Shown here: in pieces, positions 3,674 through 62,166 of the stretch
Layout of the letters: the number at the start of each line of letters is the position of its first letter
Position numbering within the stretch: the stretch's first letter is position 1
Virus record (IMG/VR): IMGVR_UViG_3300043409_000928
Coordinates: 62,001-126,000 of that record
Length of the DNA stretch: 64,000 bases
Reading direction: 5' to 3' (one strand)
The notes under the pieces: model-generated
Database searches by the model: none
What the model saw: the letters and a program-made list of their open reading frames with translations, nothing else
What the model was told of the DNA's origin: nothing
Position numbers and translations under genes: made by a program

Positions 3674-4539
3674 TTTAAGTTTAAGTAGTCACTGGTACTA
3701 TTGTTATCAACCCACAGGTGCTGTGTATCTTTGTATTTTGCAATACTTCTATCTAACAGATCGACATATTGATTTACCTGGTGATTAGTAATTAATTTAC
3801 CTCTCCAAATAAACAATACTTTCATCCCTTTGGCACTCATGAGACTTCTGTGTTTGGTTCTTAAGTTATTCCAAGCAAATGAATTTGTTTCAGCAAGTTG
3901 TGGTATAGCAATGTACTTGTTTGTGTGTTGCTTAATTGGATCTGTTAACAAGTAAAGAGTTTCGCTGGCATTGTTGTCAAATAATTTAACTCGCATTGAC
4001 AATGGTGCATCAATTAGACTAGTACGGTCGCGATGTGGTATTATATCAGCGGCACTGGACCACATGTTCCATGCAAAATCTTTATCACCTACCCAAGGCA
4101 TGTAGTCGTGTATTTGCTCAAAAATTTCAGGGAATTCGGTGTAGGTTTTCTCCAATGCATTTAAAGACCAAATTGGATTCCATCCTGGCGTTACGCTGTC
4201 TATGCTCCTATAAGTTCGATCTGTTTCCGCAACTGTGGCGCTGGCAAAATCAGCCTGAGCCTTGCTTGCATGTTGTGCATTGTTATTAAAATAAAGAATA
4301 AATTTTTCAATGTCATTGATTTTAATACTAGGAATATTGTATGGAACAAACAAGTACTTGCCATATGTTTGTTCAAGCTTGGAGTGAAGGCCAATGACTT
4401 CGGGTAGTAAGCTCAACTCGTGTTTACGAAGCTTGGTTAAATTTTCCTTGGTCTCGGTTACAGCGCCACCTACTTTACGTTCTACGTTTTGTTCGGTGTA
4501 CACTGTTTGATTATCATTGCTCCTGATCATACTTGTCAA
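3670..4539 (-). CDS. Hypothetical protein, possible cupin/2OG-Fe(II) oxygenase fold
   Basis: 289 aa, ATGA overlap with the mini-DnaE stop. HxD (IIPHRD) and a distal His (WNNLRTKHRS). Confidence 0.5.
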   Translation of the reverse strand: MTSMIRSNDNQTVYTEQNVERKVGGAVTETKENLTKLRKHELSLLPEVIGLHSKLEQTYGKYLFVPYNIPSIKINDIEKFILYFNNNAQHASKAQADFASATVAETDRTYRSIDSVTPGWNPIWSLNALEKTYTEFPEIFEQIHDYMPWVGDKDFAWNMWSSAADIIPHRDRTSLIDAPLSMRVKLFDNNASETLYLLTDPIKQHTNKYIAIPQLAETNSFAWNNLRTKHRSLMSAKGMKVLFIWRGKLITNHQVNQYVDLLDRSIAKYKDTQHLWVDNNSTSDYLNLN

Positions 4540-5120
4540 GTATACCCATAACTGATTTGTTCACAAATTAAATTCATTTGTGCAACAATGGCAACTGCAT
4601 ACGCAGTGGCGTGACTTTTCTTAAAGAAGTATTCATCGTTCTTGGGCTTCGTCCAAACTTCGTTCATAATCGTCGTCCATGGCTTCCCAATCAGATAGCG
4701 TTTCGCGGGACGGATCATTGCTAGGACCGCAGATAATTGTTCCACTGAAGTCGGCTGGGTCCTCCGGAGAATATCGCCATGCCCGTTCAAATGAAATAAC
4801 AGATTTACAAAGTCGTTGTCTTGTAATAGATCCCATAATGGCTCCTGGTTGGCTAGTTGATCCAAATGTTCTTTGCTTTTTACCTTTTGGTACAAGCTTA
4901 CATTCAATAAGTCTACTTTAAAAAATCCTAGTTCTTCTGCTTTTTTATAATCAACATCGCACCATCCGGTAAATGGATTGGCTGGTACTGGATGAAAGTA
5001 CACTCCAGTTTTATGCTTTTGCTGTTGATTATTGGCAATCTGCATTGCTGGCGTGTGTGGCAATAGATTAAGAATTGCTTCTCTATTGGCAAAGTCAATG
5101 TCTACGTCGGGATGATTCAC
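4536..5120 (-). CDS. Miniature DNA polymerase III alpha (DnaE)-like protein, 194 aa
   Basis: DnaE motifs in the correct order: PDVDIDF, KHKTGVYF, FFKVDLLNV, QPTSVEQLSAVLAMIRP, YFFKKSHATAYA. Confidence 0.85.
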   Translation of the reverse strand: MNHPDVDIDFANREAILNLLPHTPAMQIANNQQQKHKTGVYFHPVPANPFTGWCDVDYKKAEELGFFKVDLLNVSLYQKVKSKEHLDQLANQEPLWDLLQDNDFVNLLFHLNGHGDILRRTQPTSVEQLSAVLAMIRPAKRYLIGKPWTTIMNEVWTKPKNDEYFFKKSHATAYAVAIVAQMNLICEQISYGYT

Positions 5121-5320
5121 TTTTTAAGTTTCTCTTTAAACATAGTAGTCAGCTGACTCTGTTGTGTTTTAATTTGATTCATTTCTGCATAGAGCATGTC
5201 AAGCTTTTTTATAAATTCAAGCAATCGCAGTTCTAGAGATTCGTATCTAGCGCCTGCATCATCATTGTGTTGATCCACAGTACTTCGTTCGGTTCTTTTT
5301 TTAATTTCTTTATCCACCAT
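5117..5320 (-). CDS. Small coiled-coil hypothetical protein, start uncertain
   Basis: Fills the gap up to the mini-DnaE (GTGA overlap) but overlaps the upstream gene by 88 bp. Confidence 0.4.
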   Translation of the reverse strand: MVDKEIKKRTERSTVDQHNDDAGARYESLELRLLEFIKKLDMLYAEMNQIKTQQSQLTTMFKEKLKK

Positions 5321-5925
5321 TCAGTTTCCACATGTTTTGCTACCGTATCAATTTGAGCTGGTTCCATTCTATCTAATAGATTCTGTGCCGCTTCAGTGGA
5401 GTAAATGATCCATGGACTTAATCTGCCCATAACTACCATATTCATTCCTGTTGCAGGCGGAATCTTATTAAAGAAATCTCTCCAATTGTTTCCGGTTTTC
5501 TCACCCCACTCGCGCATAGTGAGAATTGTTCTTTCAAGTGCTCTATCTGCCGTTTCTTTTTTTGCGGCTTCCTGAACATACAACTGATAAGTGCCGGGCT
5601 TTTGCCAATCACTTAATTTCACTCCCATTTTAAAAAGCCAGTTAATAAACTTGTCACTTTCGTATGGGCGAAGTTCTATCAAATAGTTAGCAAATTTTAT
5701 AAATGCAATGTAATCAAAACTCCTTATAAAATCATCAACTGTCTTTGTTTTTTTAGCGTTTGGACTAACATAGCTAATAAAGTCTGTCCACACTCTAAAA
5801 CCAATTCTGCTGTCTATGTCATCCTTGTTCATCCACCGCCTTTTCTTTTCACACATGTGGTTACTAAGTGTACTTTCGCGGCTAAAGGACTTTAAACAAA
5901 ATTTACATTGATGTTGTTGTGACAT
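5233..5925 (-). CDS. Hypothetical protein with N-terminal zinc finger
   Basis: CKFCLKSFSRESTLSNHMC fits C-x2-C-x3-F-x5-L-x2-H-x-C. Confidence 0.75.
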   Translation of the reverse strand: MSQQHQCKFCLKSFSRESTLSNHMCEKKRRWMNKDDIDSRIGFRVWTDFISYVSPNAKKTKTVDDFIRSFDYIAFIKFANYLIELRPYESDKFINWLFKMGVKLSDWQKPGTYQLYVQEAAKKETADRALERTILTMREWGEKTGNNWRDFFNKIPPATGMNMVVMGRLSPWIIYSTEAAQNLLDRMEPAQIDTVAKHVETEWWIKKLKKEPNEVLWINTMMMQALDTNL

Positions 5926-6420
5926 TTATTTAAACAATTCTTTAAATTCTTTATTACCCATGTTTTGTGAAGTTGCTATTTCAGCTAATACTTCTGGGCC
6001 ATTTATTTCTCGGAACAGTTCAATTTCATCATTGCTCATTGCTGGAAACTTCTCAATGAGCCATGCTGTTAGCTTGTCTTTCTTTGCACCGCCAATTGGT
6101 GGAATAAATTCATGTCTAAGTTTAACGCCCAGTCCAACCAGTGCCAGGGCCTTCCATCGAAGTTCTTCATGTTCACTTGTGGTGGCAATGTAATCAATGT
6201 TGCTGTAGTTGTTTACATCTATTAGATACTGTTCCTGTACATCTCTAGTACCTTGTACTTGACTGGCCCAACGCTGTGCCATAAAAGTGTTTACCCCTTT
6301 TTTATCCTCATCAGATAACTTTGTGTAATAATCACCTTTACGCAGATCCACTGCCGCCATCAATTGGTCAATGGGAACTTTGTATACAGCAGATGCTGGT
6401 GCTTTCTTTTTGGTAGCCAT
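5926..6420 (-). CDS. Probable clamp-loader small subunit, gp62-like
   Basis: YYTKLSDEDKKGVNTFMAQRWAS resembles the gp62 family. Size and replication-operon context fit. Confidence 0.5.
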   Translation of the reverse strand: MATKKKAPASAVYKVPIDQLMAAVDLRKGDYYTKLSDEDKKGVNTFMAQRWASQVQGTRDVQEQYLIDVNNYSNIDYIATTSEHEELRWKALALVGLGVKLRHEFIPPIGGAKKDKLTAWLIEKFPAMSNDEIELFREINGPEVLAEIATSQNMGNKEFKELFK

Positions 6421-6429
6421 ACTGTTATT

Positions 6430-6936
6430 TTAAAACCAAATCTTGTTTAAGTCAAGCACTTCTGGAATTTTATTTGTTTCTTTTAAAAAGAAAGCACAAA
6501 CTGGTTCTTTTTTATGTTCTAAAGGAACTGCCAACACATGCCCAAACTTTAGCTTGGGCACATACCATTTTACTTCTTGGTAGATGTTGACTATTTCAAC
6601 CTTCATCCATTCGGGCTTGTAGCCGTTGATGGGATTAAAGACAAACGTGCTGAACCCACGGTCATTTAAACTCATTACATTGATAACTTCTGGCTCTCCG
6701 TGATCGGGTTCTCCAATAATCAGTGACCAATCTAATGGCACTTTGAGTTCATGACTTCCTATACGCAATACTGCCGCAGGACAACTGAAGCTTTCTAAGA
6801 AAACAAGTGGTACAAACATATAGTCAACATCAGCAGGATTGCTGTAGTCAAGTACCCCGTAGCGCAAGTCTTCATCAATTTCTTCTGGTAAACGATCTAA
6901 ATCGTATGACAGATTATCAACTGTTAATATTCTCAT
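6430..6936 (-). CDS. Hypothetical protein, possibly a degenerate Hint-like beta fold
   Basis: 168 aa, coupled to uvsW. Fold guess from the hydrophobic pattern only. Confidence 0.6.
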   Translation of the reverse strand: MRILTVDNLSYDLDRLPEEIDEDLRYGVLDYSNPADVDYMFVPLVFLESFSCPAAVLRIGSHELKVPLDWSLIIGEPDHGEPEVINVMSLNDRGFSTFVFNPINGYKPEWMKVEIVNIYQEVKWYVPKLKFGHVLAVPLEHKKEPVCAFFLKETNKIPEVLDLNKIWF

Positions 6937-8390
6937 TTATAAATTACCTTTTCAGTTTGATATGGATAGTTTGCTTCTTCATAAAATTTCTTGCGCTTGG
7001 CCAAGTGTCTTTTGGCAAACTTTGCTGTGCTTGTTATGTCCCATATCTGGACAAAGTCTTTGTCTTCTGCTTTTCTAATACCTCGGCCAATGCTCTGTAT
7101 AACCCTGACAAAACTCTTTCCAGGCTCCACTAGAACCAAGTTAAAGATCCTAGGTATATTAATACCCACAGAGGCCACACCATACGTGGCCACAATGATT
7201 TTATTTGTTGCAAGAGTAACTTCATCATACTCTTCTTTTCTATCCTTTGATTTCATGGACCCTGATACAAATACGCTTTCTGGTAAACGCTCAACCAGCA
7301 TCTTACCCGAAGCAATACGATCGACCAATACCAAAGTATTTCCACTTTGACTAATTGCATCAATGGTCTTGGCCAGTTCATCAATCCTGCGTTCATTGCT
7401 GGTCAGATATGTTAATTCTTCTTGATATGTTTTGTATTCAACTTTATCATCAAATTGCAATACCTTTACATGGCAGTTACTCAATACACCAATGTCCTGT
7501 AGTTCACTGGCCTGTAATCTATGTAGGACATTGCCCAATGATGCTGTTAGACTGATATATTCATGTTCTTCTTTGGGTATGGTACCTGTTAACCCCCAAC
7601 GAATTGGAACATTTGCAAACGGGCCCGTCAACATTGTTTTAAGTACATCAGCCTTGGCCATGTGTACTTCGTCAACAATTACTGCAATCAGGTCATCCGT
7701 AATTGCTTCAATGCCAATTGCACTGGTTCCTTCTTTGCTTCGTTTGATTAAGGAGTTGATACTTTGCCATGTTGCAATGGTATGTGTATGCCCAAGATCT
7801 TTCTCGTCACCAAAGTATACACCAACATCTAATCCCATGTTGACATAGTCTGCATGTGTCTGCCGCACTAGATCCTTGTTGGGTACAATAACAACTGTGC
7901 GGCCATACGGTTCACACGTAAGACTCATGGCCGCTGTCATTAATGTCTTGCCAGCACCTGTTGCAATCTCTTGAACACCATGCGGATTAGCAAGGAAGCG
8001 ATTGATACACTCTACTTGGTAATCGCGAATCTTAATAGGCTGGCCTTCTGCTACGTGTCCTTTGGGCCAAAGTATGTGACTAAAGGTGTCCTCGGTAACT
8101 TCAGCAAAATTGAAATTGTGCGCGGTCCGCTTGTCTTCAATTTCAATTTGCCAACCTTCCTCATCTATAATGGGCAATACTCGTTCTAATAGATTTAGAT
8201 AGGTCGACCCTGCGGTGGTAAAGAAGCTGATCTTACCATCCCATCTTCCTAGCCTAAAGGCCGGCACATGATAAGCATATGGTAATTGATATTTTAGTTT
8301 GGCTTCGCATCGTCTGCGTGTTGAAGCATCTAAGTCGTGAAACTTGACATTTACTTCATCTTTGATTTCTAATCGGCATATTCCAGGCAT
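6933..8390 (-). CDS. uvsW: UvsW-like SF2 DNA helicase
   Basis: IRDYQ, ATGAGKT, DEVH, LTGT, QSIGRGIR. Confidence 0.92.
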   Translation of the reverse strand: MPGICRLEIKDEVNVKFHDLDASTRRRCEAKLKYQLPYAYHVPAFRLGRWDGKISFFTTAGSTYLNLLERVLPIIDEEGWQIEIEDKRTAHNFNFAEVTEDTFSHILWPKGHVAEGQPIKIRDYQVECINRFLANPHGVQEIATGAGKTLMTAAMSLTCEPYGRTVVIVPNKDLVRQTHADYVNMGLDVGVYFGDEKDLGHTHTIATWQSINSLIKRSKEGTSAIGIEAITDDLIAVIVDEVHMAKADVLKTMLTGPFANVPIRWGLTGTIPKEEHEYISLTASLGNVLHRLQASELQDIGVLSNCHVKVLQFDDKVEYKTYQEELTYLTSNERRIDELAKTIDAISQSGNTLVLVDRIASGKMLVERLPESVFVSGSMKSKDRKEEYDEVTLATNKIIVATYGVASVGINIPRIFNLVLVEPGKSFVRVIQSIGRGIRKAEDKDFVQIWDITSTAKFAKRHLAKRKKFYEEANYPYQTEKVIYK

Positions 8391-8475: not shown

Positions 8476-8515
8476 GTGCAAAATCACTGGTTTTAAAAAG
8501 CAATTTGTCCATAAT

Positions 8516-8542
8516 CAAAAGAAAAGGCTCCGTAGAGCCTTC
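8516..8542 (-). terminator. Rho-independent terminator of the DUF4214 gene
   Basis: AAGGCTC-4 nt-GAGCCTT followed by TTCTTTT on the minus strand. Confidence 0.8.
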
Positions 8543-8557
8543 CTTAAATCGAGTAGA

Positions 8558-9457
8558 TTACAAGACTACTGGAGTATACTCAATGCCGGTAGTAGCAAGA
8601 CCAACCAGTCCAATTGTGGTTTCAAATGCTGGCAACTCACTGGCGGCAACTAGCACATCAGCTTGTGACAAATTGCCATTGCTCATCCATGCTGTGTAGT
8701 CTGTGACTTGTGCCAATGTTGCATCAGTGCCAAATACATTTTTGTAAACATGCTTGATGAATGTTTCATTGCTGACGCCACCTGCATCTGTTTTGTAAAC
8801 ATCCGTGGCCAACAACGCTTGGGCCAATTGTTTGTTGGTCCATCCTGCATCAGCTAGACCAATTCCAATTCCTTTATATGCGTTAGTAACATCAGCAGTA
8901 CCAAGTGCGGCTGACAACAATGCATATACATCACCTGCACGACCTGCGGCATCATAGGCAATGGCCTTGTCTGTGAACACCACACGCTCGTGATCAGCAA
9001 GGTTAAATTCCACATTGGTGGCCAATGTGCTGTCTAATTCAATTTTACCAGCAGTCTTGGCAACGGTGTATTCGGTACTTGCACCACCGACCGTATAAGT
9101 GTCAACACCTGCGGTGCCAGTAACATCAACTGTGATATCAACTGTGCCGTCACCTGCACGACCTGTACCTACTACACCAAATGTAGCAATCTTACCTGCT
9201 GTGCCAACTGTGGCCACTGTGACGATTAGGTTGTTGGCCGCTGTTCCACCTAGTGCTGTACCAGCAAGAGTGATAGTGTCACCTGCAACATAGCCCGAAC
9301 CTGAGCTGGCCGCAAGTGAGTCAAGGACCACAGAATATGTTCCGTTGGTCTTTGTAACATCAAATATGGCTCCGTCTCCTGTGCCACCTGTTAAACCTGT
9401 AACATTTTGGTAAGTTGTGTTTACCGGTTTGTCTTTGATTGTAATTGTCGTTGTCAT
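8558..9457 (-). CDS. DUF4214-domain (S-layer/secreted-protein-like) protein, 299 aa
   Basis: C-terminal DHERVVFTDKAIAYD...AGDVYALLSAALG...SNETFIKHVYKNVFG pattern. G/T-rich N-terminal beta domain (GSGYVAGDTITLAG). Confidence 0.75.
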   Translation of the reverse strand: MTTTITIKDKPVNTTYQNVTGLTGGTGDGAIFDVTKTNGTYSVVLDSLAASSGSGYVAGDTITLAGTALGGTAANNLIVTVATVGTAGKIATFGVVGTGRAGDGTVDITVDVTGTAGVDTYTVGGASTEYTVAKTAGKIELDSTLATNVEFNLADHERVVFTDKAIAYDAAGRAGDVYALLSAALGTADVTNAYKGIGIGLADAGWTNKQLAQALLATDVYKTDAGGVSNETFIKHVYKNVFGTDATLAQVTDYTAWMSNGNLSQADVLVAASELPAFETTIGLVGLATTGIEYTPVVL

Positions 9458-9525
9458 AATTTTCCTTTATAGTATGATTTATAAACAAACTGTTTATGTT
9501 ACTATTGTACATGAATTTAATTACA

Positions 9526-9551
9526 AAACATGTGCGTGTACGCACATGTTT
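9526..9551. repeat. Perfect 12-bp inverted repeat, operator-like
   Basis: AAACATGTGCGT-GT-ACGCACATGTTT. Confidence 0.8.
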
Positions 9552-9576
9552 GACACGATTGTCCAGAATATATTGC

Positions 9577-9603
9577 CAAAAGAAAAGGCTCCTAAGAGCC
9601 TTC
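9577..9603 (-). terminator. Rho-independent terminator of the RNA ligase gene
   Basis: 25 of 27 nt identical to the 8516-8542 terminator. Confidence 0.8.
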
Positions 9604-9651
9604 TCCCCACCGACCACATTCCACGCAAATAGTCAGCTGTCGGTGTCGAAC

Positions 9652-10698
9652 TTAGTCCTTGCTTTTCAACAAGAATCTGTTGCTGATTGCCTTAAAGGAT
9701 TGATCAAGTGAGTGTGCCTTAAGCACAATGCCTTCTCTTTCCGTTTGAGCATTAAGGTTACTTTTGCCTTCTGCAAATTTCAACATGTTGGCAATGGTCA
9801 CAATGCCCAGTGAGTCATACAGTTCGGCACTATATGCTAGTACAGGTACATGCATCAGCTGGTACAGCTCACAAAACTCATTTCGTTCTACTGGATTGAA
9901 ATAGCGTTTGGCATCTATGTCATAAATGTCAAAAGTGTAAAAACTTTGACCTTTAATTTTGTAAGGATTCCCCTGAATGCCTTCGCCTACAATTTCACCT
10001 TGTACAGCAAGATTGCGACCGCTTTCGATAATGGCCGTGATGATCTGATCACGGTGTGCCACTTTCCAAAGTGTATTGCCTTCTGTGTCCTTTAGATTTA
10101 GGTTACGGCTACATACTCCATGATCATCACCATTGACATACACTGTCATTGACGAACCATCCAGCTTCTCGGTAACTTCCCAATTGACTCGGTCAGCCTG
10201 CCATTGTGCAAACTCTGTGCTTAGGTTTTGAACACGCTCTTGGTCTGTCTTTGGAATAAATGTTGGGAACAGACCACGCACTTCGCCTGCCAAGTGTGCT
10301 GGCACAGGTGGATCGTATTTTACGATGCCTAAAATTTCAGTGACATCAAACGGTTCATCAGATGCCAAGCGAGTCTTATGAAATGCCTCTACCACTTTGG
10401 GAAAATCCCAGTACCTAAGAAGCAAGCCTTGGCTTAATTGGCCGCGAAGTTTTACTGTACGCAGACGCTCACCTGGAATGCCATCGTATACTCGAGGCTC
10501 TTGACCTTTGCTGAGGAACGGGGCAAGTGCTGTGGGAATCCAACTGTCAATTTCACAATAGACAGCCACGTCTCCCACTTTGAATTCATCCTTTTTAATG
10601 ACCACAGTCCAGCCACCAACCACTGCACATTCAATTGCGTCAGCATCTGGGATTGCCCGGATTTCGTCAATCGTTCTCATGGTTGCTAGTTTACGCAT
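9652..10698 (-). CDS. RNA ligase, Rnl2/DRB0094-like with N-terminal OB-like domain
   Basis: Nucleotidyltransferase motifs EKLDGSS, QGE, FDIY, EGIV, FKAISNRFL. Confidence 0.88.
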   Translation of the reverse strand: MRKLATMRTIDEIRAIPDADAIECAVVGGWTVVIKKDEFKVGDVAVYCEIDSWIPTALAPFLSKGQEPRVYDGIPGERLRTVKLRGQLSQGLLLRYWDFPKVVEAFHKTRLASDEPFDVTEILGIVKYDPPVPAHLAGEVRGLFPTFIPKTDQERVQNLSTEFAQWQADRVNWEVTEKLDGSSMTVYVNGDDHGVCSRNLNLKDTEGNTLWKVAHRDQIITAIIESGRNLAVQGEIVGEGIQGNPYKIKGQSFYTFDIYDIDAKRYFNPVERNEFCELYQLMHVPVLAYSAELYDSLGIVTIANMLKFAEGKSNLNAQTEREGIVLKAHSLDQSFKAISNRFLLKSKD

Positions 10699-12838: not shown

Positions 12839-13297
12839 TCAATTATTTTGTTTTGCCATTTGTGAAAGGTATTCTTCATTGTGAATCCATTTATTCTTTA
12901 CCAAGAAACCCCATTCTCTTTGCTTTGGTCCAGGCACGAACAATGACCAACATGTAATATCTGGGTCAAGCTCGATGCGATGATAAGACCTACTGCTACA
13001 GATTCTAAAGTGACCAGGTTTTCTCCAATGGGCTAATTCGCCAAACTTGTTGCCGTGTTTATCAAATTGAGGAATCCATTCATAGTATCCGCCTTTTAGA
13101 ATCAATGTAAAATACGGCCACGGATGATCATGCACATCATCTGGATCACTTTTGCAAAACTTGTGTACAAAGATGTTGAACGGAAACCATGTACGATCTT
13201 TAAGAAACACATAGTAGCGTTCCAACAACGGTTCACTGCTTCGACGATCTAAAATAATTCTGTGTCGTCCAAGTCTTTGCATTAGTTTTTTAATCAT
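12839..13297 (-). CDS. Cupin-like metal-binding protein
   Basis: HKF...HDHPW...HRIEL pattern. Confidence 0.7.
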   Translation of the reverse strand: MIKKLMQRLGRHRIILDRRSSEPLLERYYVFLKDRTWFPFNIFVHKFCKSDPDDVHDHPWPYFTLILKGGYYEWIPQFDKHGNKFGELAHWRKPGHFRICSSRSYHRIELDPDITCWSLFVPGPKQREWGFLVKNKWIHNEEYLSQMAKQNN

Positions 13298-15060: not shown

Positions 15061-16038
15061 TTAAGCTGAACGACTACGAATCATCTTTAGGATGTCATCG
15101 ACGCTGGGCTTTGCGGCTCCAGCAGGTGCGGCCACTGCGGTTGTTACTGTCGGAGCAGGCGCGGCCACTGCGGCAGGCTTGCTTGCTACTACTGGAGTGT
15201 CTTCATCAGCGTCAGCAACTGCCCCTGCTGTAGAAGCAGATGCGGTAAGTTGAACACCACTTGGACGATAAAACTTGCTCCACTTTTCTGGATCATACAA
15301 CTGACCATCAACACTGGCTTCAAACATTTCCATGATAGCACGAACTTCGTCTACACCTGGACGCTTGGGCATAAAGTCGTTCAAGTTGAACAGGCCGTGT
15401 GTTGCAATTGCTTGCAATTCCACTTCGTTCAAGCCACGCTCTTTACGTGCCCAACCTGATGTTGAGTAGTCAGCATAGCCACCCTTTTGCGTCTTGTTCA
15501 AACGGAAGTCTGTGCCACGCATGTAGTCTGTTGGCAATTCTTCCATGTCAGGATCCATTAAGGCCTGTTTGATCAAGGTAAAGATCTGTGGGCTGATGAT
15601 GAAACGGCGCACTGGATTTTCTGGAACACTTGATTCTTCCATTGGGCTGTTGACAACAAAACCTTGGAAAACATAACTGCGTTTCTTCCAATATTTGCGT
15701 CCAAGTGTTTCCATGTTGGGATCTTTGAACCAAGGACGGATTGTTGCGTGAACTGGACATGTTTCGTTCCACATTTCAACGCAAGGTACTTGAACAATAA
15801 CTTTCTTGTTTTCGTCTTGTCCCTTGACTCCCGGGAACTCAATACGAATCATTTGACGCTCACGCCAAAAGAATGTATTTGTGTCATCTCCATCTGGGAG
15901 AAAACGCATTGATGCGGATGTGCCTTCGGGGATATTCCAGTGTGCGTAAATTGCGTTATCACCGGTGCTGGTATTAGAACCACCAGACTTTTGTGCTTGC
16001 TCGGCTAGGCGAGCGCGGATTTCTGCTAAAGTTGCCAT
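15061..16038 (-). CDS. gp32: Single-stranded DNA-binding protein, gp32-like
   Basis: [37 protein letters not shown], flexible C-terminal tail. Confidence 0.88.
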
Positions 16039-16066
16039 GATAAATTTCCTTTATGTATTAGCCAAT

Positions 16067-16090
16067 AATAGTGTCAGACCCTATTGGGTC
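16067..16090 (-). promoter_or_regulatory. Candidate H-type pseudoknot in the gp32 leader
   Basis: GACC-C-AAUAG-GGUC-UGACA-CUAUU. Confidence 0.5.
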
Positions 16091-16127
16091 AAACAACACA
16101 CGCTTCAATTGTTTGGGCATGTGTTGT

Positions 16128-16157
16128 ATTATACTTATGATTGCAGTCAAAGAGCAA
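16128..16157 (-). promoter_or_regulatory. sigma70-type promoter of gp32
   Basis: TTGCTC-18-TATAAT. Confidence 0.55.
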
Positions 16158-16215
16158 TAGCCAAATCAATCTATTTTTGTCATTTTGGGCAAATGCGTTT
16201 AAATTGGTGTTTTGG

Positions 16216-16221
16216 TAAATA
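16216..16221 (+). promoter_or_regulatory. Late promoter TAAATA of the fibre gene
   Basis: Followed by a leader with SD AAGGA before ATG 16259. Confidence 0.7.
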
Positions 16222-16258
16222 TCTCAAAGCCACGACCCTGGCAAAAAGGAAAAATACA

Positions 16259-19200
16259 ATGTCAACTCGTAAAATTAATACCATCAAGGTAAACGATGTA
16301 ACACCAACCGACCACTTGGGACGGTTAGGTGAAATCACCTACAGAGACGGATACTTGTACTACCACGATGGTGTCACCCCAGGTGGTGAACTAATCAGTG
16401 GTGGCAGTGGTGGCGGAGGCGGACCTACAAGCTGGAGTAGCGTTACAGGCAAGCCCAGCTTTGCCACTGTTGCTACAAGCGGATCTTATGCTGACTTAAC
16501 TGGCAAACCAAGTATCCCAAGTAAAGTAAGCGACTTAACAAACGACAGTGGGTTTATTACCAGTGTTGCCTGGACGGATGTCTCTGACAAGCCAGCATTG
16601 TTCTCAGGTGCCTACACAGACTTAACTGGAAAACCAGCATTGTTCAGTGGCGACTACGATGACTTGACCAACAAGCCAACATTGACCACGGGACCTGCTG
16701 GTAATGATGGCGCCGCAGGCGCACAGGGACCACAAGGCGAACCAGGAGCCGCAGGCGCACAGGGACCTGCTGGTAATGATGGCGCCGCAGGCGCACAGGG
16801 ACCACAAGGCGAACCAGGAGCCGCAGGCGCACAGGGACCTGCTGGTAATGATGGCGCAGCCGGAGATCCAGGAGTAGGTGTACCGACAGGTGGTACAGTA
16901 GGACAAGTTCTTGCTAAAATAGACAGCACTGATTATAGCACAGAGTGGGTAACACCCGCTAGCGGCAGTGGCCCAACAAACGAAATTACTAACACAAGTC
17001 CAGAAGGCTCTATATATTCTGTTAGCGTAGGTACTGATGGTGTTGTTACTATGACAACTGCTCGTGGTGGCATTGAGTTCGGTGCCATGCCAGAAGTTGG
17101 CGGACCTTCACACTTCCACATCATGCGTCCAGCGGGACAAAATTCGTCAACTGATTTGTACTTTGGTGATGACTACAACTATGTTAAGATGCCAGGACTT
17201 TATGGATCAAATCCAACTACACAACAAGGTGTTGAAATTGGTTCCAGCATCAACGAAGGCACAGTCAGCGTTTGGAAGTTTGGCACAGATGGTACTACCA
17301 CATTCCCAACGCTAACAGTACCTATCAGCGACAATGCTAATCCAAGTGGCACTGGGCAAACTATAAAGTTCAGCGACTCCTCACAGCAGGCCATCATATT
17401 TGGACCAGCATCAACATCAGAAACTAATTCCGCTCAACGTATTATTATACAAGGTGCACCTGGATATACGGGAACTGGTGGCGAAGGTGGCGATGTTTAC
17501 TTGTGGGCTGGACCGGGCGGTGACACAGATGGTAATGGCGGTGATATCAAAGTCCGTGGTGGCTATGGCAATGGCACTGGTGGCGGTGGATACCTAAACT
17601 TCCAAGCAGGCGATAGTGCCACTGGTCAGGGCGGATACATCAATATTGAAAGCGGGGAATCTGGAACCCAGGGCCAGGGTGGTGATATTGATATTCGGGC
17701 TCGTAGTGGTGGAGACATTGATATCCGTGCTGATGGTGGCGGTGAAATAACACTACTCACACAGTCAGTAGGTGGAAATGAACACAATTGGCAGTTTGGC
17801 AACAGTGGTTCATTAACATTGCCTGGTGGTGGTATAATCACAGATAGTGTTCAAACTGTGACCATAAGTGGTGCTGGAACCTCAGAGGTGAATCAAACAT
17901 ACAACATAGTCTCCAATGGAGTGTATGTTGGGCAAACTGATAGTGCTTACCAAATTGACTACCCGGAGGCACCGTCTACCACATACAAACTACGCATCAA
18001 CACTGATGCCGGAGGGTTTTATGAATCTGAGGATCTTATCACCTGGACTATTGTGGCCGGTGCAGGTGGTGGTACAACACCTGTCCCTACTGGTGTCATA
18101 GTTCCTCAACGCATCACGGTCACTGTTGACTCAAGCAGTTGGAAGTTTGGCGCAGATGGTGATCTAGTATTACCCGCAGGCAAAACAATTAGAGACACAA
18201 GTGGCATAGATTTATTGGCCGACGACACAACATTATTAGAACCATACAAGGGCTTTAGAGCGCACTATGGTACCATGTACAATGGCACGGATGATGAAAA
18301 CGGTCCCATCAACAAACTGGTAATTTACAAATCCACAGCGTCACCTAGCAGTGCCATTGACACCAGCACTGAAAGTGATGACTTTCGAGTAACAGGCTTG
18401 ACCGGCAGTGATGTTGTGGCCATGTTGGTTGTTGTCAGTGATGGCACTGATTTTGAAATACAAACTCCCACTGCAACACTAAAGACATTTGTAGAAAAGA
18501 TCATTGATGAAGTTATCTTAGACGAAGGAGTCGAAGGTGATGTAAACACCGTGTCAGCAATGAGAACAGCATTCTACGCTAACTTCAGTAACTTTAACAC
18601 AGTGATTCCCAATGTAAAAGTTGACCTTGCGTTCTTCACTGTCAATAATCAGTTCAACATCAGTCCTCTATTTACTACAGGAGAAGGTGCAACATTTAGC
18701 GGCATAAGCTATAACATGGTCAACGACACGCTGGACTTGGGTAATTGGGGTCAATCAAATCCAGGTACACACGAAGTAGGTGACGTATATGTGATTCTTG
18801 GTAATACAATTCAAGATGCCAACAGTAATTTTCTTTTAACACCAGACAACGATGTTACTGTAACAATTACTGGTGTTAGTGGCGGCGCAATTCAAACTTA
18901 TACTGTAACAGGTACATTGCCTAGACCAGCAGAAATATGGCCAAGCACAAGTATCAGTGACGGTGGCGATGATGAATACGATGGTGCTAATGCTATTCAC
19001 ACCAACTTGGCCACAGAAATTAGTTACCGTGGCGGTGATGTTTACATTGAAGCAGATGAGTTTAACAGCAACGGCGAATCCACTTATGTTGTAACTTATC
19101 AAGCAGGTATTTTTGGTATATTTGCCACAGGCTGTGACATCAGCACTATAGGCACCAGCGGGGAGGGCGGCTATGGCAACGACAGCAGTAGTAGTGGATT

Positions 19201-20953
19201 TGACGGTGATGGCATTGCTGTCACTGGTAGCTTATATGGCGACAGCGAAAACGCAGTCGACATTGGTGACTTTGTGTTTACTAATTCCACACTTACTGCC
19301 ACAGGCAACGGTGGCGACATGTTCATCAAAGCAGGGGACGATCTGTGGCTGGATGCACTACAAGATGATGTTCATATTCGTGCCAGCGGTGATGTTAGAA
19401 TCAAAGTTGGCTATGATTTTGCCGAGGATACAGCACAATCTGAGTGGCAATTTGACACCGCTGGTTACATCTACTTTCCAGACGGTAGCCAACAAGGAAC
19501 TGCTTATACTGGTGACTATGATGATTTAACTAACAAACCAACTATACCAACCAGCTTCAGTAGTTTAGTCAACGGTTCTTTCACTGCAAGCCTTGGCACA
19601 GACGGCGTACTAACACTACCCGAAGGTGGCACTATAGATAACACACCAACAATCGTTACTGTTACAGTAGACCAGTTAACTTCTATCACAGCCTGGACTG
19701 GAACTTTGGTTTTTACTAGAGTCAGTGACATTTTATATCAAGTATTACCAAGTGGACCAACTATGGAACTGGTTGTCGATACTTGGAGACTGAGGTTTCA
19801 AACTGGTACATGGTACGAATCAACAGACCTTATAAATTGGGGAAATGTTGCCGGTTCATCACCTGCACCGGTTGGTACTCTGGAGATATTGGAGACAATG
19901 AACCTAACAGTGGATAGTAATGAATGGATCTTAGATAATAATGGCACATTAACATTGCCCTCAGGTGGCACTATCTCGGAAGGCGGTGGATTTACTGGTG
20001 CTATTCGACTAACGCCTGCAGGTGGCTCCAACGAATATCAAGCATTGGTAATTTATCCAACTGGCACAGGAGATGGTGATCACATACACTTGACCGCAGG
20101 TGGTGGCACCACTGAACTGTATCTTGGCAGTGACAGCCACTTTGTCAAGTTGGCAAATGATGGCGCTGTAGTAATACAGGCCAATGATGGCGTATCTAGT
20201 AATCAACAATGGCTGTTTGACACAGCTGGTAAACTACAACTACCAGCAGGTGGTGATATTGTTGACAGCACGGGCACAACAGTATTAGGTAGTGGAACTA
20301 CATTGCCCGCAAATGCCAGTGGTTATTTGGTCAACGATGGTGCTGGTGCGTTGTCCTGGGCCGCGGGTGATGGCACATTCAGTGGCGCTTACGCAGATCT
20401 AACTGGCAAGCCAACATTGTTTGATGGTGCATACAGTAGTTTAACTGGCACACCAGCATTGTTCTCAGGTGTTTATGCTGACTTGACTAGCAAGCCAACA
20501 TTGTTTGATGGCGACTACAATAGTTTAACCAACAAGCCAACCATCAGAATAGCTGTGGCAACTGGCAGTGGTCCTGGTGGCAACTTGCAAGCAGATTCAC
20601 TGGCCTTGGCTGGTCTTAACCCCACCGAAAACATACCATCAACTTGGGGTGGCGACCTAATACTTCAAGGTGGTGTAGGTGGCGCCAATGGTGACTTGTA
20701 TGGTGAAGTTAGAATCAAAAGCGGTACAATTGGTGCAAATTATGAATGGCACTTTACTACTGATAAGAAAATTAAATTACCAGCAGGTGGCGACATTGTC
20801 AACAGCACTGGTACCAGTGTAATGGGTGGTAGTGGTAGTTATGCTCCAGCAAATGCCGGTAACTGGGCAGGTACTGCTCCTACTACAATAGCCGAAGCAT
20901 TGGATCGAATAGCTGCCAAGCTTGCGTCTTCGGGTAGTGCTAACATGCCTTAA
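16259..20953 (+). CDS. Large mosaic tail fibre/adhesin with collagen-like segment, 1564 aa
   Basis: Start reassigned to MSTRKIN. G-X-Y repeats, FSGxYxDLTxKP repeats, repeated WxFxxxGxLxLPxGGxI motif, G/T/S-rich. Confidence 0.8.
16691..16857 (+). repeat. 72-bp perfect tandem repeat (2 copies plus 23 bp) encoding collagen triplets
   Basis: Units begin at 16691, 16763 and 16835. Confidence 0.9.
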
Positions 20954-21865: not shown

Positions 21866-23422
21866 TTATAAGAAGCCAATTGGCATAGGGCGCAGTATTT
21901 CTTCTGTCCCTGCATTAATAAGTCGATCGTATGTTTTAGCGTCCCAAGTCATAATAACTTCTACCATACGCAATACCAGTATAGTTGCCATTACCAAGTC
22001 ATCTGTTTCGCCATCTTTAGCGGCAAAACTTGCTCCGCGGGCAATAAAGTTCTTAAGTTCTCGTAGCAAGTTATGACTATAAATTGTCATCTTATCACTT
22101 TCTACATAATTCTTTAGTCGCATACATGCTGATATTTTTGTTTTGTGAGTAGTAGCAAAGCCGCGGCGCCCCTTGCTTTGTCCTGCTCTGCGTACTTCTT
22201 GCACAAATGTACCAGAAATATTTTGTTCTCCATACTCCCTTACACTAATAAGTGCCGCTTCACCAATTGTGTTGTTTTCTACTGACCAATATAATTCTGC
22301 ACTATTCCCAGTTTCTTCTTTTAGCCAATTTAAAATGGCAACAAGTGTACGCAATTGCCCTTGAATGTCGGTTTTATTATGTTGCCATTCAGCTATTTGT
22401 TCTAGTTCAGGTAGTTTGAATACTTGAATGGCCGCTGGGTCGCTACCTGTGCCCAAACTAGGATCCCAACCAATTACATACGCACCTTGCGGTTGTGGAT
22501 ATTTGAAAATTCTAACTTGTCCCAGCTTGCCACTGGGTTCTTTGCTTTCCATTGTGATTAACTTCATTGAGTTAACCAGTGTTTCGTCTGCAATGATAAA
22601 TTCACATTCGTGTTCGCGCAAGAAACGTTCTTCACCAATTTTAACACGTTCAGTTGCGGCCCAAGCCTCATCGCGATCAGGATGCGAGTTCCAAATAAAT
22701 TTAATGCTGGCAAATCCATTACGACCCAGTCCGGTGGCATTTGGATTACCATATGCATCAGTTTTCTTGGTAGCGTCTTTCCAAATACGTGCAAATTGGT
22801 CATCGTCTTGATTAGGTGTACTAGTAATAATACACTTACCACCTGTACTCAATGTAGGACTGATTGAAGTCCAGAACTCACTGGCTATGCGTGGTTTAAC
22901 GAATGCAAACTCATCGCAATAAATCAATGACAGTGACATACCACGTGCTGTTGTTTCTGTTGTTGTGGTTGATACAATACGACTACCATTGTCAAAGTCA
23001 ATACTACCTTTGTTGTAGCTTGTTGCACCAGCTTTTAAAAATGTTGGAAGTGTTTCGTATGTATAGCGAACCCTTTGCATAATCTCTTGTGCACCGGCAA
23101 ATTTATGGGCCGCAATAAGAATAGTTTGATCTGCCATAAACATTGCTCGCCAAACTAGGTAAGCGGCCGCACATGCAGTCTTGCCCATCTGTCGTCCTAA
23201 CATGTTGATGCTGTAACGATTGTTGTGATAACAATCAATCAGTTCACGTTGATAATCAAACAGCTTGAATTGAACTTTACCTCTGGTTGGATGTTGCACC
23301 CAGCAGTACGTGTCGATAAAGTATATAGGATCTTGAGCGCACAAGGCAAGTTCACGGACATTATCGTCCGTGAACTTTTCTACCTTGAATGGAGCCTTTA
23401 CAAAAGTATTCTCAAGTGCCAT
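21866..23422 (-). CDS. gp17: Terminase large subunit, gp17-like
   Basis: GRQMGKT, LIYCDEFAF, STP, nuclease motifs WDPSLGTGSD and DDLVMA. Confidence 0.95.
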   Translation of the reverse strand: MALENTFVKAPFKVEKFTDDNVRELALCAQDPIYFIDTYCWVQHPTRGKVQFKLFDYQRELIDCYHNNRYSINMLGRQMGKTACAAAYLVWRAMFMADQTILIAAHKFAGAQEIMQRVRYTYETLPTFLKAGATSYNKGSIDFDNGSRIVSTTTTETTARGMSLSLIYCDEFAFVKPRIASEFWTSISPTLSTGGKCIITSTPNQDDDQFARIWKDATKKTDAYGNPNATGLGRNGFASIKFIWNSHPDRDEAWAATERVKIGEERFLREHECEFIIADETLVNSMKLITMESKEPSGKLGQVRIFKYPQPQGAYVIGWDPSLGTGSDPAAIQVFKLPELEQIAEWQHNKTDIQGQLRTLVAILNWLKEETGNSAELYWSVENNTIGEAALISVREYGEQNISGTFVQEVRRAGQSKGRRGFATTHKTKISACMRLKNYVESDKMTIYSHNLLRELKNFIARGASFAAKDGETDDLVMATILVLRMVEVIMTWDAKTYDRLINAGTEEILRPMPIGFL

Positions 23423-49119: not shown

Positions 49120-49145
49120 AGAAAAGGCTCCAAAGAGCCTTTTCT
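49120..49145 (-). terminator. Terminator of the head operon
   Basis: AGAAAAGGCTC-4 nt-GAGCCTTTTCT. Confidence 0.88.
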
Positions 49146-60387: not shown

Positions 60388-62166
60388 TTAGTTAATTTCA
60401 TTCACTTGTGTATCTGTGTCAAGCATGGTAAATCCACTTTCTTTGACTACCAAAAGTACATTGTTGACTCGACTTGCTAACTCGTCTCTATGCGAGATTA
60501 AGAAAATATTTCGATTCATTTCTCTACCCATGGATTTTAAGATTGACATTGAACATTCAATACCAACCTGATCCATACCTGAATCCACCAACTCATCAAT
60601 AAACAACAAGTTCATTGGTTCAGTAAAGCTCTCATACACATCTCTAAAACTCCAGCTTAGTGCTAGAATTAATCGATTCCGTTCGCCCCTACTCAAGTTA
60701 TCAAAATCAAAGCTTTGACCCAGTTGGTTGATATCAACTTCTAAATCGCTTCTAAAAGAAACTTGATGCGGCAATTGTAACTTATCCAAGTAATAACCCA
60801 ATCTGTGATTCAAATACGCTAAATTCTGTTCAATAATGCGTTTTCGGACAAATGAGTCTTTGCTTGTAAGTAACTTGAGCAAGAATTCTTGATGTTCAAG
60901 CAGTTTACTTACCCTGTTAATTTCATCCCAGCTAACCTCTGCAAGCGCAGTATTTTTAAGAGCTTCAATTTGTTCCTGATAAGGATCTTCTTCTTGGTCT
61001 TTTGCTTCTAGTTGTTTTCGAATGTTTTCTAGATTATTTTTATGTGCCGCGGCATCCTCTACATTTTGATATTTGGTCTGAGGTCTTGCCGGCAATTGAT
61101 TAATAGTACGCACTACCATGTCAGCCTGCGCCAAATAGCCATGTTCTTCTTTTAATGCAGTATCAGTTACTTTAACAGTATTGGTTGCAGATGCAACCAT
61201 TTCATCGTGCTTCTCGTCATGTACATCTTGCCCACAACTGGGACATTGATGTTCTTCGATTAAAGACAAGCTTCGTTGTGCTGACACAAGTGCATCTTGC
61301 AATTTCTTAACATTGCTTTGTCTTGTTGCCAATTCTTTATTGGCTAACTTTAGGCGATTTTCGTTTTCCTTATAAACAGCAAGGGCTCGATGAGAATCAA
61401 GTTCCAAATCAATATCAGTGTTTTCTAATTCAGTGATAGCAGATACATAGGCAGTAAGATCATCTGTTTTCTTTTTGACCCACGTTCGCGAACGGCGTTG
61501 CAAATCTTCTACAGTTGTTTGTACTCTGACATTGCTTTCTTGTAAAGCTTTGATTCGTGCTTCCTCATCGCGCACTTGCTCTTTACTATTTTTAATTTGT
61601 TCTCGTAGTAACTCAGCCTTTTCACTCAACTGAGTAATGCCAAGCAGTTCTTCGATGATGTCTCTTTGATCGTTTGATTTCAAACTTAAAAACGGTTGTG
61701 TATATGTGTTTAGTGCAACCAGATGTTTGAACATCTCGCTACTCATGCCAATAATGCGACCAATTGCTTCTTGTGTGACTCTATTCTCACCAGCACCTTC
61801 ATCTGTACCAGCTTCGTTGACTTCATGATCGTCAACAATAAAACGTAACAGGTTAGGCTTGCGACCACGCTCAATCCTATACTTGTTGCCGTTCTTTTCA
61901 AATTCAACTGTGACCAACATGTTATTAATGTTGGTCTTATTGATCAAGTTTTCTTTGCGAATGTTGGTAAGAGCTGATCCAAAGATAGCATAGCTGAGTG
62001 CGTTAACAATGGTGGTCTTACCTACACCGTTTCTAGCACCGTCGCCGCCTAAGTCTAAGTTATGCCCTAACACAAGAGTCAATCCATACTGATCCAGTAG
62101 AAGGGCCTGGGTAACATTACCCACGCTCATGAAGTTTTTGATTGTTATATTTTTAAACTTGATCAA
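60388..62166 (-). CDS. gp46: Recombination endonuclease ATPase subunit, gp46/SbcC-like
   Basis: NGVGKT, Zn hook CPSC, LSRGE, LFIDE, ISH. Confidence 0.93.
   Translation of the reverse strand: MIKFKNITIKNFMSVGNVTQALLLDQYGLTLVLGHNLDLGGDGARNGVGKTTIVNALSYAIFGSALTNIRKENLINKTNINNMLVTVEFEKNGNKYRIERGRKPNLLRFIVDDHEVNEAGTDEGAGENRVTQEAIGRIIGMSSEMFKHLVALNTYTQPFLSLKSNDQRDIIEELLGITQLSEKAELLREQIKNSKEQVRDEEARIKALQESNVRVQTTVEDLQRRSRTWVKKKTDDLTAYVSAITELENTDIDLELDSHRALAVYKENENRLKLANKELATRQSNVKKLQDALVSAQRSLSLIEEHQCPSCGQDVHDEKHDEMVASATNTVKVTDTALKEEHGYLAQADMVVRTINQLPARPQTKYQNVEDAAAHKNNLENIRKQLEAKDQEEDPYQEQIEALKNTALAEVSWDEINRVSKLLEHQEFLLKLLTSKDSFVRKRIIEQNLAYLNHRLGYYLDKLQLPHQVSFRSDLEVDINQLGQSFDFDNLSRGERNRLILALSWSFRDVYESFTEPMNLLFIDELVDSGMDQVGIECSMSILKSMGREMNRNIFLISHRDELASRVNNVLLVVKESGFTMLDTDTQVNEIN

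Follow-up and report, generated by a model that had tools for sequence, protein, structure and literature searches.

The 64,000 nucleotides of viral DNA considered here (positions 62,001 to 126,000 of IMG/VR record IMGVR_UViG_3300043409_000928; this whole stretch is called the window and is numbered from its first letter) carry, on the minus strand at 8558..9457, an open reading frame (ORF; P0001) of 299 amino acids whose C-terminus matches the DUF4214 domain. The ORF begins with ATG, includes its stop codon within these coordinates and encodes the peptide GSGYVAGDTITLAGTALGG quoted in an earlier annotation of the locus (hereafter the sequence-only reading). Its product is a chimera of a phage-fibre-type N-terminal module and a bacterial RTX/DUF4214 C-terminal module, and, within an abundant clade of freshwater jumbo myoviruses (~330-350 kb), the gene forms a self-contained, moron-like unit of expression. 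The ORF is separated by 194 bp from an RNA ligase gene upstream (9652..10698, minus strand) and by 167 bp from a UvsW-like helicase gene downstream (6933..8390, minus strand); both neighbours lie outside the cassette and mark the site of its insertion. The wider surroundings encode a DnaB-like helicase, a primase, a DNA polymerase, an AAA protein and UvsY-, UvsX- and SSB-like proteins; the sequence-only reading was accurate in placing the gene in the middle of the replication block, since its neighbours are replication and recombination genes. It also rightly called the gene self-contained, as this possesses its own promoter-like elements, a Shine-Dalgarno site and a terminator made of a GC hairpin and a T-run. 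More than 1,700 homologues and a ratio of nonsynonymous to synonymous substitution rates (dN/dS) of 0.08 identify the ORF as a real gene rather than a chance reading frame. The viral record to which the window belongs has a length of 285,304 bp and a completeness of 86%, and the sequencing runs containing the stretch are freshwater and lake metagenomes. Its UvsW protein is nearest (49-57% identity) to those of jumbo myoviruses such as Sinorhizobium phage Phosso, Pseudomonas phage PA5oct, Agrobacterium phage Atu_ph07 and Klebsiella phage RaK2.

The Pfam DUF4214 model (PF13946) matches residues 212-274 (8636-8824, minus strand) at an E-value of 2e-7, its score of 31.4 bits exceeding the 23.2 bits set as the curated gathering threshold, and a six-frame search of the genome with the same model returns this gene at 34.1 bits. 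The DUF4214-like C-terminus proposed earlier is thereby confirmed, and the domain call, for which failure in hidden Markov model (HMM) searches had been set as the refuting test, held. The AlphaFold2 model (61-sequence alignment; mean predicted local distance difference test score, pLDDT, 94.9; predicted template-modelling score, pTM, 0.82) is beta-rich up to about residue 170 and all-helical over residues 173-290. The helical part (residues 171-299; 8561..8947, minus strand) is made of tandem DUF4214-like units, the second and more divergent of which (~173-215) is visible only in the model and in alignments, and ends in the terminal motif LVGLATTGIEYTPVVL. It is preceded by a short RTX-like beta-roll (residues 106-170; 8948..9142, minus strand), for which the similarity is at the level of the fold only: the RTX rolls of MIS38 lipase, LipA and CyaA give a local fold match over 52-71 residues (root-mean-square deviation 1.5-3.0, Foldseek E-value 0.04-0.2). 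Membership of the RTX family is defined by tandem GGxGxDxUx nonapeptides recognised by the family HMM; residues 106-170 hold one nonapeptide-like GTAGVDTYT, and the HemolysinCabind model (PF00353) finds no match in the 299-residue protein at E ≤ 0.1. Compared as a whole with the PDB, the model yields weak local Foldseek matches alone (E ≥ 0.02), in which the helical part resembles phycobilisome-linker domains and residues ~106-170 resemble the RTX beta-rolls of type-I-secreted lipases.

The two C-terminal parts together form a module shared with bacterial proteins. Residues ~110-297 align, at 30-42% identity and with E-values down to 1e-29, with the last ~185 residues of proteins that number in the hundreds and measure 200-1,300 amino acids; many of these carry RTX (HemolysinCabind) repeats and bear the source name 'Ca2+-binding RTX toxin-like protein'. 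By structure, residues ~110-297 superpose at 1.8-3 Å, over ~188 residues, on the very end of the chain in AlphaFold-DB cluster representatives whose names are DUF4214, haemolysin-type calcium-binding or 'Type I secretion C-terminal target domain'. Of 127 relatives, 114 have the module ending no more than 8 residues from the C-terminus, and a terminal motif, LVGLxxTG[IL]E[YF]xP, is conserved among them and kept as LVGLATTGIEYTPVVL in the phage protein. One close bacterial relative (P0291) is encoded within a few kb of an operon with all three type I secretion components (ABC transporter, AprE-type adaptor and OEP), and another (P0167) has no such operon alongside. The type I-secreted relatives invoked in the sequence-only reading are thus borne out by the shared C-terminal module and by the position of P0291, and the link once drawn to Caulobacter and RsaA is not: PF13946 has no match in the Caulobacter vibrioides control genome, and among the 14 control genomes those of Escherichia coli and Synechococcus elongatus do match. 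As a separate observation, P0167 (L125:14524-17640), a bacterial phospholipase-like RTX/DUF4214 protein, adjoins WYL, SMODS and SLATT genes in a context resembling a defence island. With regard to export, the first 30 residues of the phage protein are hydrophilic and form no hydrophobic N-terminal segment, in agreement with the earlier statement that a signal peptide is absent. The protein is rich in T, A, G and V and contains no cysteine; absence of cysteine, as a matter of general knowledge, and an RTX-like roll are typical of exported proteins. A search of the phage genome for type I secretion parts found neither ABC_tran nor OEP, so export would need host machinery.

The N-terminal domain (residues 1-105; 9143..9457, minus strand) has a different origin. 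It is a beta-rich, phage-specific module of ~85 amino acids that occurs as repeats in giant fibre-like phage proteins: it matches repeats inside proteins of 1,000-2,500 amino acids lying in phage tail and fibre modules, beside homologues of Mtd_N and of T4 gp13 and gp15, as well as parts of giant ORFs (2,153 and 4,953 amino acids) found in the clade itself. Modelled alone, it reaches a pLDDT of 90. Its only significant fold neighbours are large phage proteins with lectin/glucanase-like or chitin-binding-like domains; no neighbour appears among solved structures (best Z 3.6) or among cellular AlphaFold clusters (E ≥ 0.14).

The family is large and old. More than 1,700 relatives are present in a large protein database, and the best 120 are 87-93% identical and 298-299 amino acids long; an exhaustive search of 50%-identity representatives returns 2,398 relatives; and full-length homologues of ~300 amino acids at 39-53% identity are also found on phage-like contigs of 72-261 kb. 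Public databases list the family as an uncharacterised 'DUF4214 domain-containing protein [uncultured Caudovirales phage]'. The clade is represented by five near-complete genomes, which measure 332-353 kb, are 95-100% complete and in one case have terminal repeats; each encodes exactly one full-length copy. The dN/dS of 0.08 was obtained over 56 unique coding sequences, with 0.065-0.10 for each of the three parts of the protein, and synonymous divergence (dS) among clade members is ~1.2, near saturation. Several searches returned nothing: PHROGs contains no family for the 299-residue protein, tblastn and megablast against ~50,700 phage records find no match, a sequence search of the PDB finds none either, a feature search of the ESM Atlas gives scores of 0.81-0.82 that equal the noise level, and a single-protein scan of bacterial and archaeal species-representative genomes finds no close relative of the whole protein. 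The sequence-only reading had taken the gene for a captured host gene. This is tenable for the C-terminal two thirds, which are of bacterial type, and fails for residues 1-105, which are a phage-only module, so that 'host-type' applies to the C-terminal two thirds only. As a recent event, horizontal capture from the host is ruled out by the dS of ~1.2 and by the 39-53% identical homologues in other jumbo phages, and further by the lack of any full-length bacterial relative.

At the level of the DNA, the gene is part of an inserted cassette of ~1,061 bp (8516..9576, minus strand) comprising an activator box, promoter, Shine-Dalgarno site, ORF and the right-hand copy of a terminator hairpin. Eight loci of the closest sister phages show the corresponding empty site, in which the RNA ligase gene is followed directly by UvsW over 180-215 bp, without the DUF4214 gene; their flanks are 79-99% (AAA protein), 91-97% (RNA ligase) and 88-95% (UvsW) identical to those of the window. 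The empty site has a single hairpin (GGCTCTTAGGAGCC and a T-run) 3' of the RNA ligase gene. In the window this hairpin is doubled to form a direct repeat of ~24-26 bp around the cassette: the left copy (9577..9602, minus strand; AAGGCTCTTAGGAGCC hairpin and TTTTCTTTTG) is the RNA-ligase terminator and corresponds to the only copy in the empty-site sisters, and the right copy (8516..8541, minus strand; AAGGCTCTACGGAGCC hairpin and TTTTCTTTTG) is the terminator of the cassette. Judged from this arrangement of repeats, the window's cassette apparently entered the gap between RNA ligase and UvsW at the terminator hairpin, which is now duplicated. Presence or absence in sister phages, which the sequence-only reading had put forward as a check, thus has a double answer: the gene is absent from the window's site in the nearest sisters, and one copy is present in every near-complete genome. 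In DNA run X1, the probable source sample, one low-depth contig (4.8x versus 13.4x) joins 8515 to 9620 and skips the cassette; the joint has sides of 25 nt and falls at the repeated hairpin, which makes it weak evidence, and it may represent an empty-site variant co-occurring in the same lake. A third copy of the hairpin (GGCTCTTTGGAGCC and a T-run), readable on both strands, stands at 49122-49143 of the window; hairpins of this type may be a recurrent terminator of the genome and hence a ready substrate for recombination.

Elsewhere in the clade the gene, at ~90% protein identity, sits in quite different neighbourhoods. Clustering of the 2-kb flanks of ~80 loci gives at least 12 upstream and at least 11 downstream contexts, the commonest with PstS upstream and AhpC/CMD downstream, and the arrangement seen in the window is common to only three or four loci. 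Between contexts, nucleotide similarity runs from the palindrome upstream of the promoter to just beyond the GC hairpin and T-run; promoter, Shine-Dalgarno site and terminator travel together with the ORF. In several clade members the cassette lies immediately behind a tmRNA (transfer-messenger RNA) gene or inside a tRNA array. A tmRNA gene is directly upstream of the gene in L059, L089 and L105, and tRNA genes are directly upstream in L082, L096, L099 and L108; L096 and L099 have no promoter for the gene alone, which would there be transcribed together with the tRNAs. Host-like auxiliary genes surround the cassette in relatives (L001, L003, L005, L011, L012 and L121), encoding PstS, AhpC/peroxiredoxin, CMD (AhpD-like), PsiE and TerC, as well as a Porin_4 porin, Bax1-I, NifU and Fe-S assembly proteins, ribosomal protein S21, ClpX/ClpP and thioredoxin reductase; RF-1 fragments are found at L009. 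Upstream of the 53%-identical homologue in L011, ~1.6 kb (4406-6001) contain no called gene; ARAGORN places a tmRNA at 5582-6024 with an implausible reported tag, and inspection by eye suggests a tag ending in ...LAA.

Upstream of the gene the cassette carries a 24-bp palindrome, AACATGTGCGT-AC-ACGCACATGTT (9527..9550; core TGTG-N8-CACA at 9531-9546), which is a putative site for an activator of the CRP/FNR family. The predicted -10 hexamer TACAAT (9504..9509, minus strand; TATAAT in most relatives) follows the box core after 21 nt, without a -35 match, and the Shine-Dalgarno region AAAGGAAAA (9460..9468, minus strand) is conserved in all contexts. The core TGTGCGTNNACGCACA occurs once in the window and nowhere else in the 285-kb genome, where the pattern TGTG-N8-CACA occurs once between genes, as the box itself, and eight times inside ORFs, with about four occurrences expected by chance. 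Among the 91 loci carrying the gene, 75 have a TGTG-N8-CACA box within 200 bp upstream: ~60 loci, the window included, have near-consensus TGTGCG-N4-CGCACA variants, and 13 or more match the CRP consensus type exactly (TGTGATCCGGATCACA, TGTGACCCGGATCACA or TGTGATGGGAATCACA). Two geometries are found. In the first, the box is followed by 21 nt and TATAAT with no -35 element, which sets its centre at about -41.5 from the predicted start, on the assumption of a start 7 nt after the -10; in the second, it is followed by 19 nt and TTGACA-N17-TATACT and is centred at about -62, both figures resting on predicted -10 boxes. Activator sites at E. coli CRP/FNR promoters lie near -41.5 in class II, where the site replaces the -35 element, and near -61.5 in class I. 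By these E. coli rules, the predicted geometry fits class II and class I activator positions. Neither this genome nor its five near-complete relatives encode a protein with a CRP-type helix-turn-helix or cyclic-nucleotide-binding (cNMP) domain, so that the reader of the box, if of the CRP family, should be the host's. The remaining 16 of the 91 loci have no box and show a plain TTGACT-N17-TATACT promoter, often immediately 3' of tmRNA or tRNA genes; regulation by the box is therefore not obligatory.

This raises the question as to whether the palindrome is a CRP-family site at all. That it is instead the operator of a phage-encoded or unrelated repressor, or a structural element of RNA or DNA, seems somewhat unlikely. 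In the commonest variant, TGTGCG-N4-CGCACA, the fifth base of each half-site differs from that in TGTGA-N6-TCACA; the box is included in one contig from an RNA library; and, where a full -35/-10 promoter is present, it could equally be a remote operator. Such a reading sits poorly with the exact consensus TGTGATCCGGATCACA, which replaces the box in 11 or more close loci, and with TGTGATGGGAATCACA, which stands before a 46%-identical homologue in another jumbo phage. Nor does it fit the spacing, fixed at the two predicted classical activator positions with the -35 absent where the box overlaps it, the lack of CRP-family genes in the six phage genomes, or the precedent of cyanophage promoters with sites for the host regulator NtcA (PMC3037559).

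As to expression, contigs 80-90% identical to the gene body occur in three lake metatranscriptome runs and are consistent with transcription of the gene. In runs X19 and X20 a contig covering the RNA-ligase operon reaches only to 9611, immediately short of the upstream hairpin. In terms of host, the phage record carries, outside the window, 29 tRNA genes (G000:C1:16821-33681) and a permuted, two-piece tmRNA (G000:C1:43002-43400) for which ARAGORN reports the tag ANDSQFALAA; relatives have the tags ANDEQFALAA and ANDSQFSIAA. These tags presumably resemble those of beta- and gammaproteobacteria, a style that may point to a proteobacterial host, as a lead rather than a test; the tags are the only pointer bearing on the betaproteobacterial or similar host hinted at in the sequence-only reading.

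Taken together, the best explanation for the gene, which we hold tentatively, is that it encodes a secreted receptor mask under the control of a CRP-family regulator of the host and serves superinfection exclusion. Host RNA polymerase would transcribe the gene from a promoter dependent on, or boosted by, a CRP-family regulator bound at the TGTG-N8-CACA box; the protein, having no signal peptide, would leave the cell through a host type I secretion system by means of its C-terminal module; it would stay on the producing cell, where the DUF4214 module, the fibre-type module or both would bind a surface glycan such as the O-antigen of lipopolysaccharide (LPS); and the receptors so masked would exclude superinfecting phages, while progeny might be spared adsorption to cells already infected. 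The cassette itself would move within genomes by recombination. We infer in this way the identity of the regulator, the timing of expression, export, surface binding and exclusion. The idea of surface masking and superinfection exclusion has a direct precedent in Psh (PP_1794), a protein of Pseudomonas putida KT2440 described as an RTX-DUF4214 'phage shielding helix-rich protein', with an RTX part ahead of a DUF4214 domain at the C-terminus (bioRxiv 10.64898/2026.09.02.748959, a preprint of September 2026). A restored type I secretion system exports Psh, which by masking receptors makes the cell resistant to sixteen phages from six genera and leaves neighbouring cells unprotected (bioRxiv 10.64898/2026.09.02.748959). 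Binding of Psh to O-antigen has been proposed from modelling together with the presence of an aggregate in LPS preparations (bioRxiv 10.64898/2026.09.02.748959).

Several points weigh against a secreted mask. The likeness to Psh is at the level of architecture only, PP_1794 having been compared by description; the RTX part is minimal, with one or two turns, and misses the Pfam HemolysinCabind model; the phage brings no secretion genes, and both the type I system and the CRP homologue would have to be the host's; and the 16 box-less loci rely on a plain strong promoter or on a position behind tRNA or tmRNA genes. One RNA contig (X25) extends upstream past the box as far as 9614, which, if it is true RNA, implies read-through or an upstream start, and the RNA evidence as a whole consists of assembler contigs with possible DNA carry-over. 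Finally, universality, single copy, strong conservation and an N-domain shared with fibres fit a virion protein equally well. The main rival is a virion-associated accessory, that is a small fibre, whisker or decoration protein binding host surface glycans from the particle, which we regard as rather unlikely. It would account for the single copy in all five near-complete genomes, for strong purifying selection on every domain, for a beta composition rich in T, G, A and V, and for an N-domain homologous to repeats of giant tail- and fibre-module proteins, the clade's own included. It does not account for the fact that, in the contexts read, the gene is never in a recognisable structural module and has for neighbours PstS, AhpC, CMD, PsiE, a porin, tRNAs, tmRNA or replication genes; that its promoters are of sigma-70 type with an activator box instead of a shared late-type motif; that the C-terminal module is the terminal module of secreted bacterial proteins; or that there is no PHROG family and no match in the ~50,700 phage records, hence no related known virion protein.

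Export or release could also serve a purpose other than masking, such as aggregation or adhesion favouring escape from grazing, binding of Ca2+ or nutrients alongside PstS/AhpC-type genes, or action after lysis as a soluble decoy coating uninfected cells or debris; this is improbable in our estimation. The secretion-type architecture is the same as for a receptor mask, the gene is often found among host-like auxiliary or envelope genes (PstS, porin, TerC, AhpC), its control element is of a starvation (CRP-like) type, and bacterial DUF4214 modules accompany very diverse cargo, including peptidases, FG-GAP and phospholipase-like domains; against this, the only experimentally characterised RTX-DUF4214 protein, Psh, is a cell-bound phage shield without cross-protection, and the phage protein has no enzymatic or nutrient-binding domain. 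Least probable of all is a purely intracellular role without secretion, in which the helical DUF4214 part (a phycobilisome-linker-like fold) would be a protein-protein adaptor and the beta part a scaffold: the absence of a signal peptide and of phage-encoded secretion machinery, the weak (E ≥ 0.02) resemblance of the helical domain to phycobilisome linkers, which are intracellular adaptors and its only neighbours among solved structures, and the place of the window's copy among replication genes speak for it, but that place is a recent and rare insertion rather than the ancestral context, the 110-297 module and its terminal motif belong to type-I-secretion-associated proteins, and the cysteine-free composition and RTX-like roll noted above are those of exported proteins.

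Three further features of the region and its relatives are worth recording. In the window, a 1,662-amino-acid ORF (15965-20953, plus strand) with collagen-like and tail-fibre PHROG matches at residues ~180-360 stands between the recombination genes and the large terminase (21866-23422) and abuts an SSB-like gene, with an ORF overlap at 15965-16038. Between the UvsY-like and UvsX-like genes, an ORF of 152 amino acids (12839-13297, minus strand) matches the PHROG 'cysteine dioxygenase' (cupin-like) and could represent a further small accessory gene inserted among the recombination genes. The RNA-ligase gene of one group of relatives (L032, at 6001-8042, L033 and L034) matches as two pieces, residues 1-112 and 117-348, ~950 bp apart, which suggests an insertion in the gene, for example an intron, an intein or a homing-endonuclease cassette.

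Read at its boldest, the locus would mean that an entire clade of abundant lake jumbo phages has turned a bacterial anti-phage device on its competitors, in the form of a phage-made homologue of the Psh-type shield that joins a module of its own receptor-binding fibre to the bacterial RTX/DUF4214 export-and-anchor module in a CRP-switched cassette of ~1 kb, a proposition we think unlikely in its entirety. If it is true, the infected cell's own type I system coats the cell with a protein aimed at the phage's own receptor, the shield is switched on via the host's CRP circuit (starvation or cyclic AMP), and the whole unit hops around the genome. Secreted RTX-DUF4214 shields have just been described, so far solely in bacteria defending themselves; their occurrence in a phage would extend the device to superinfection exclusion. 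Whatever its role, the protein is ecologically relevant, being universal and strongly conserved in a clade present in very many lake metagenomes. Small (299 amino acids), cysteine-free and confidently modelled, it offers compact material for the study of DUF4214 surface binding. The association of a CRP-type box with one gene through a dozen contexts would provide a clear-cut natural example of a phage gene brought under a global regulator of the host, and the filled and empty sites with their duplicated terminator hairpin provide a precise example of accessory-cassette shuffling in jumbo phages.

Receptor masking, morons and terminator-mediated cassette shuffling are already known kinds; new are the fusion of a phage-encoded Psh-like module to a fibre-type module, the universal presence of the gene in an abundant lake jumbo-phage clade as a mobile cassette with defined junctions, and a gene-specific CRP-type box at predicted classical activator positions. 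For the cassette, the closest comparison is with the promoter-early stem-loop (PeSL) cassettes of T4-type phages, in which small accessory genes with their own regulatory signals are likewise present or absent between otherwise near-identical phages, are bracketed by repeated terminator-type stem-loops where recombination apparently takes place, and occupy many positions within hyperplastic regions (PMC2839356, PMC4122927). The junction repeat described here is a terminator hairpin alone (~24 bp), whereas published PeSLs are composites of promoter and terminator; the promoter is specific to the gene and has a unique activator box, whereas that of PeSLs is a genome-wide early-promoter motif; and the phage is a jumbo relative of RaK2 and PA5oct rather than a classical T4-like phage.

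For the box, the NtcA and Pho-box promoters on cyanophage genes are alike in placing a phage gene under a global regulator of the host, in the case of NtcA one of the CRP/FNR family, and in making phage expression follow the physiological state of the host (PMC3037559). NtcA sites (GTA-N8-TAC) occur 1-16 times per genome before diverse genes (PMC3037559). By comparison, the TGTG-N8-CACA box is found once per genome, travels with one gene and occupies both class I and class II positions as predicted.

For the protein, classical exclusion or receptor-masking proteins include T5 Llp, T4 Imm and Sp and prophage-encoded O-antigen modifiers. They are alike in the proposed outcome, a surface refractory to further adsorption or injection, and differ in being lipoproteins, inner-membrane proteins or enzymes with Sec/Lol targeting. 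To our knowledge, no phage-encoded, type-I-secreted coat protein of the RTX/DUF4214 type has been described. The bacterial RTX/DUF4214 proteins share the C-terminal module and its terminal motif as set out above; they carry several true RTX repeats and cargo of peptidase, FG-GAP, Big_5 or phospholipase-like type, in place of which the phage protein has its phage-only module. Psh is the nearest counterpart in architecture: both proteins have an RTX-like beta part followed, in the same order, by a helix-rich C-terminal DUF4214 domain, both lack an N-terminal signal peptide, and both fall within the wide group of DUF4214-terminal proteins linked to type I secretion. Compared with Psh, the present protein is encoded by a phage, without adjacent type I secretion or O-antigen genes, its RTX part is reduced to one or two turns that fail the Pfam RTX model, and it has an additional N-domain of phage-fibre type. 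The role reported for Psh, masking of phage receptors at the cell surface, is the role that the sequence-only reading had guessed for the phage protein.

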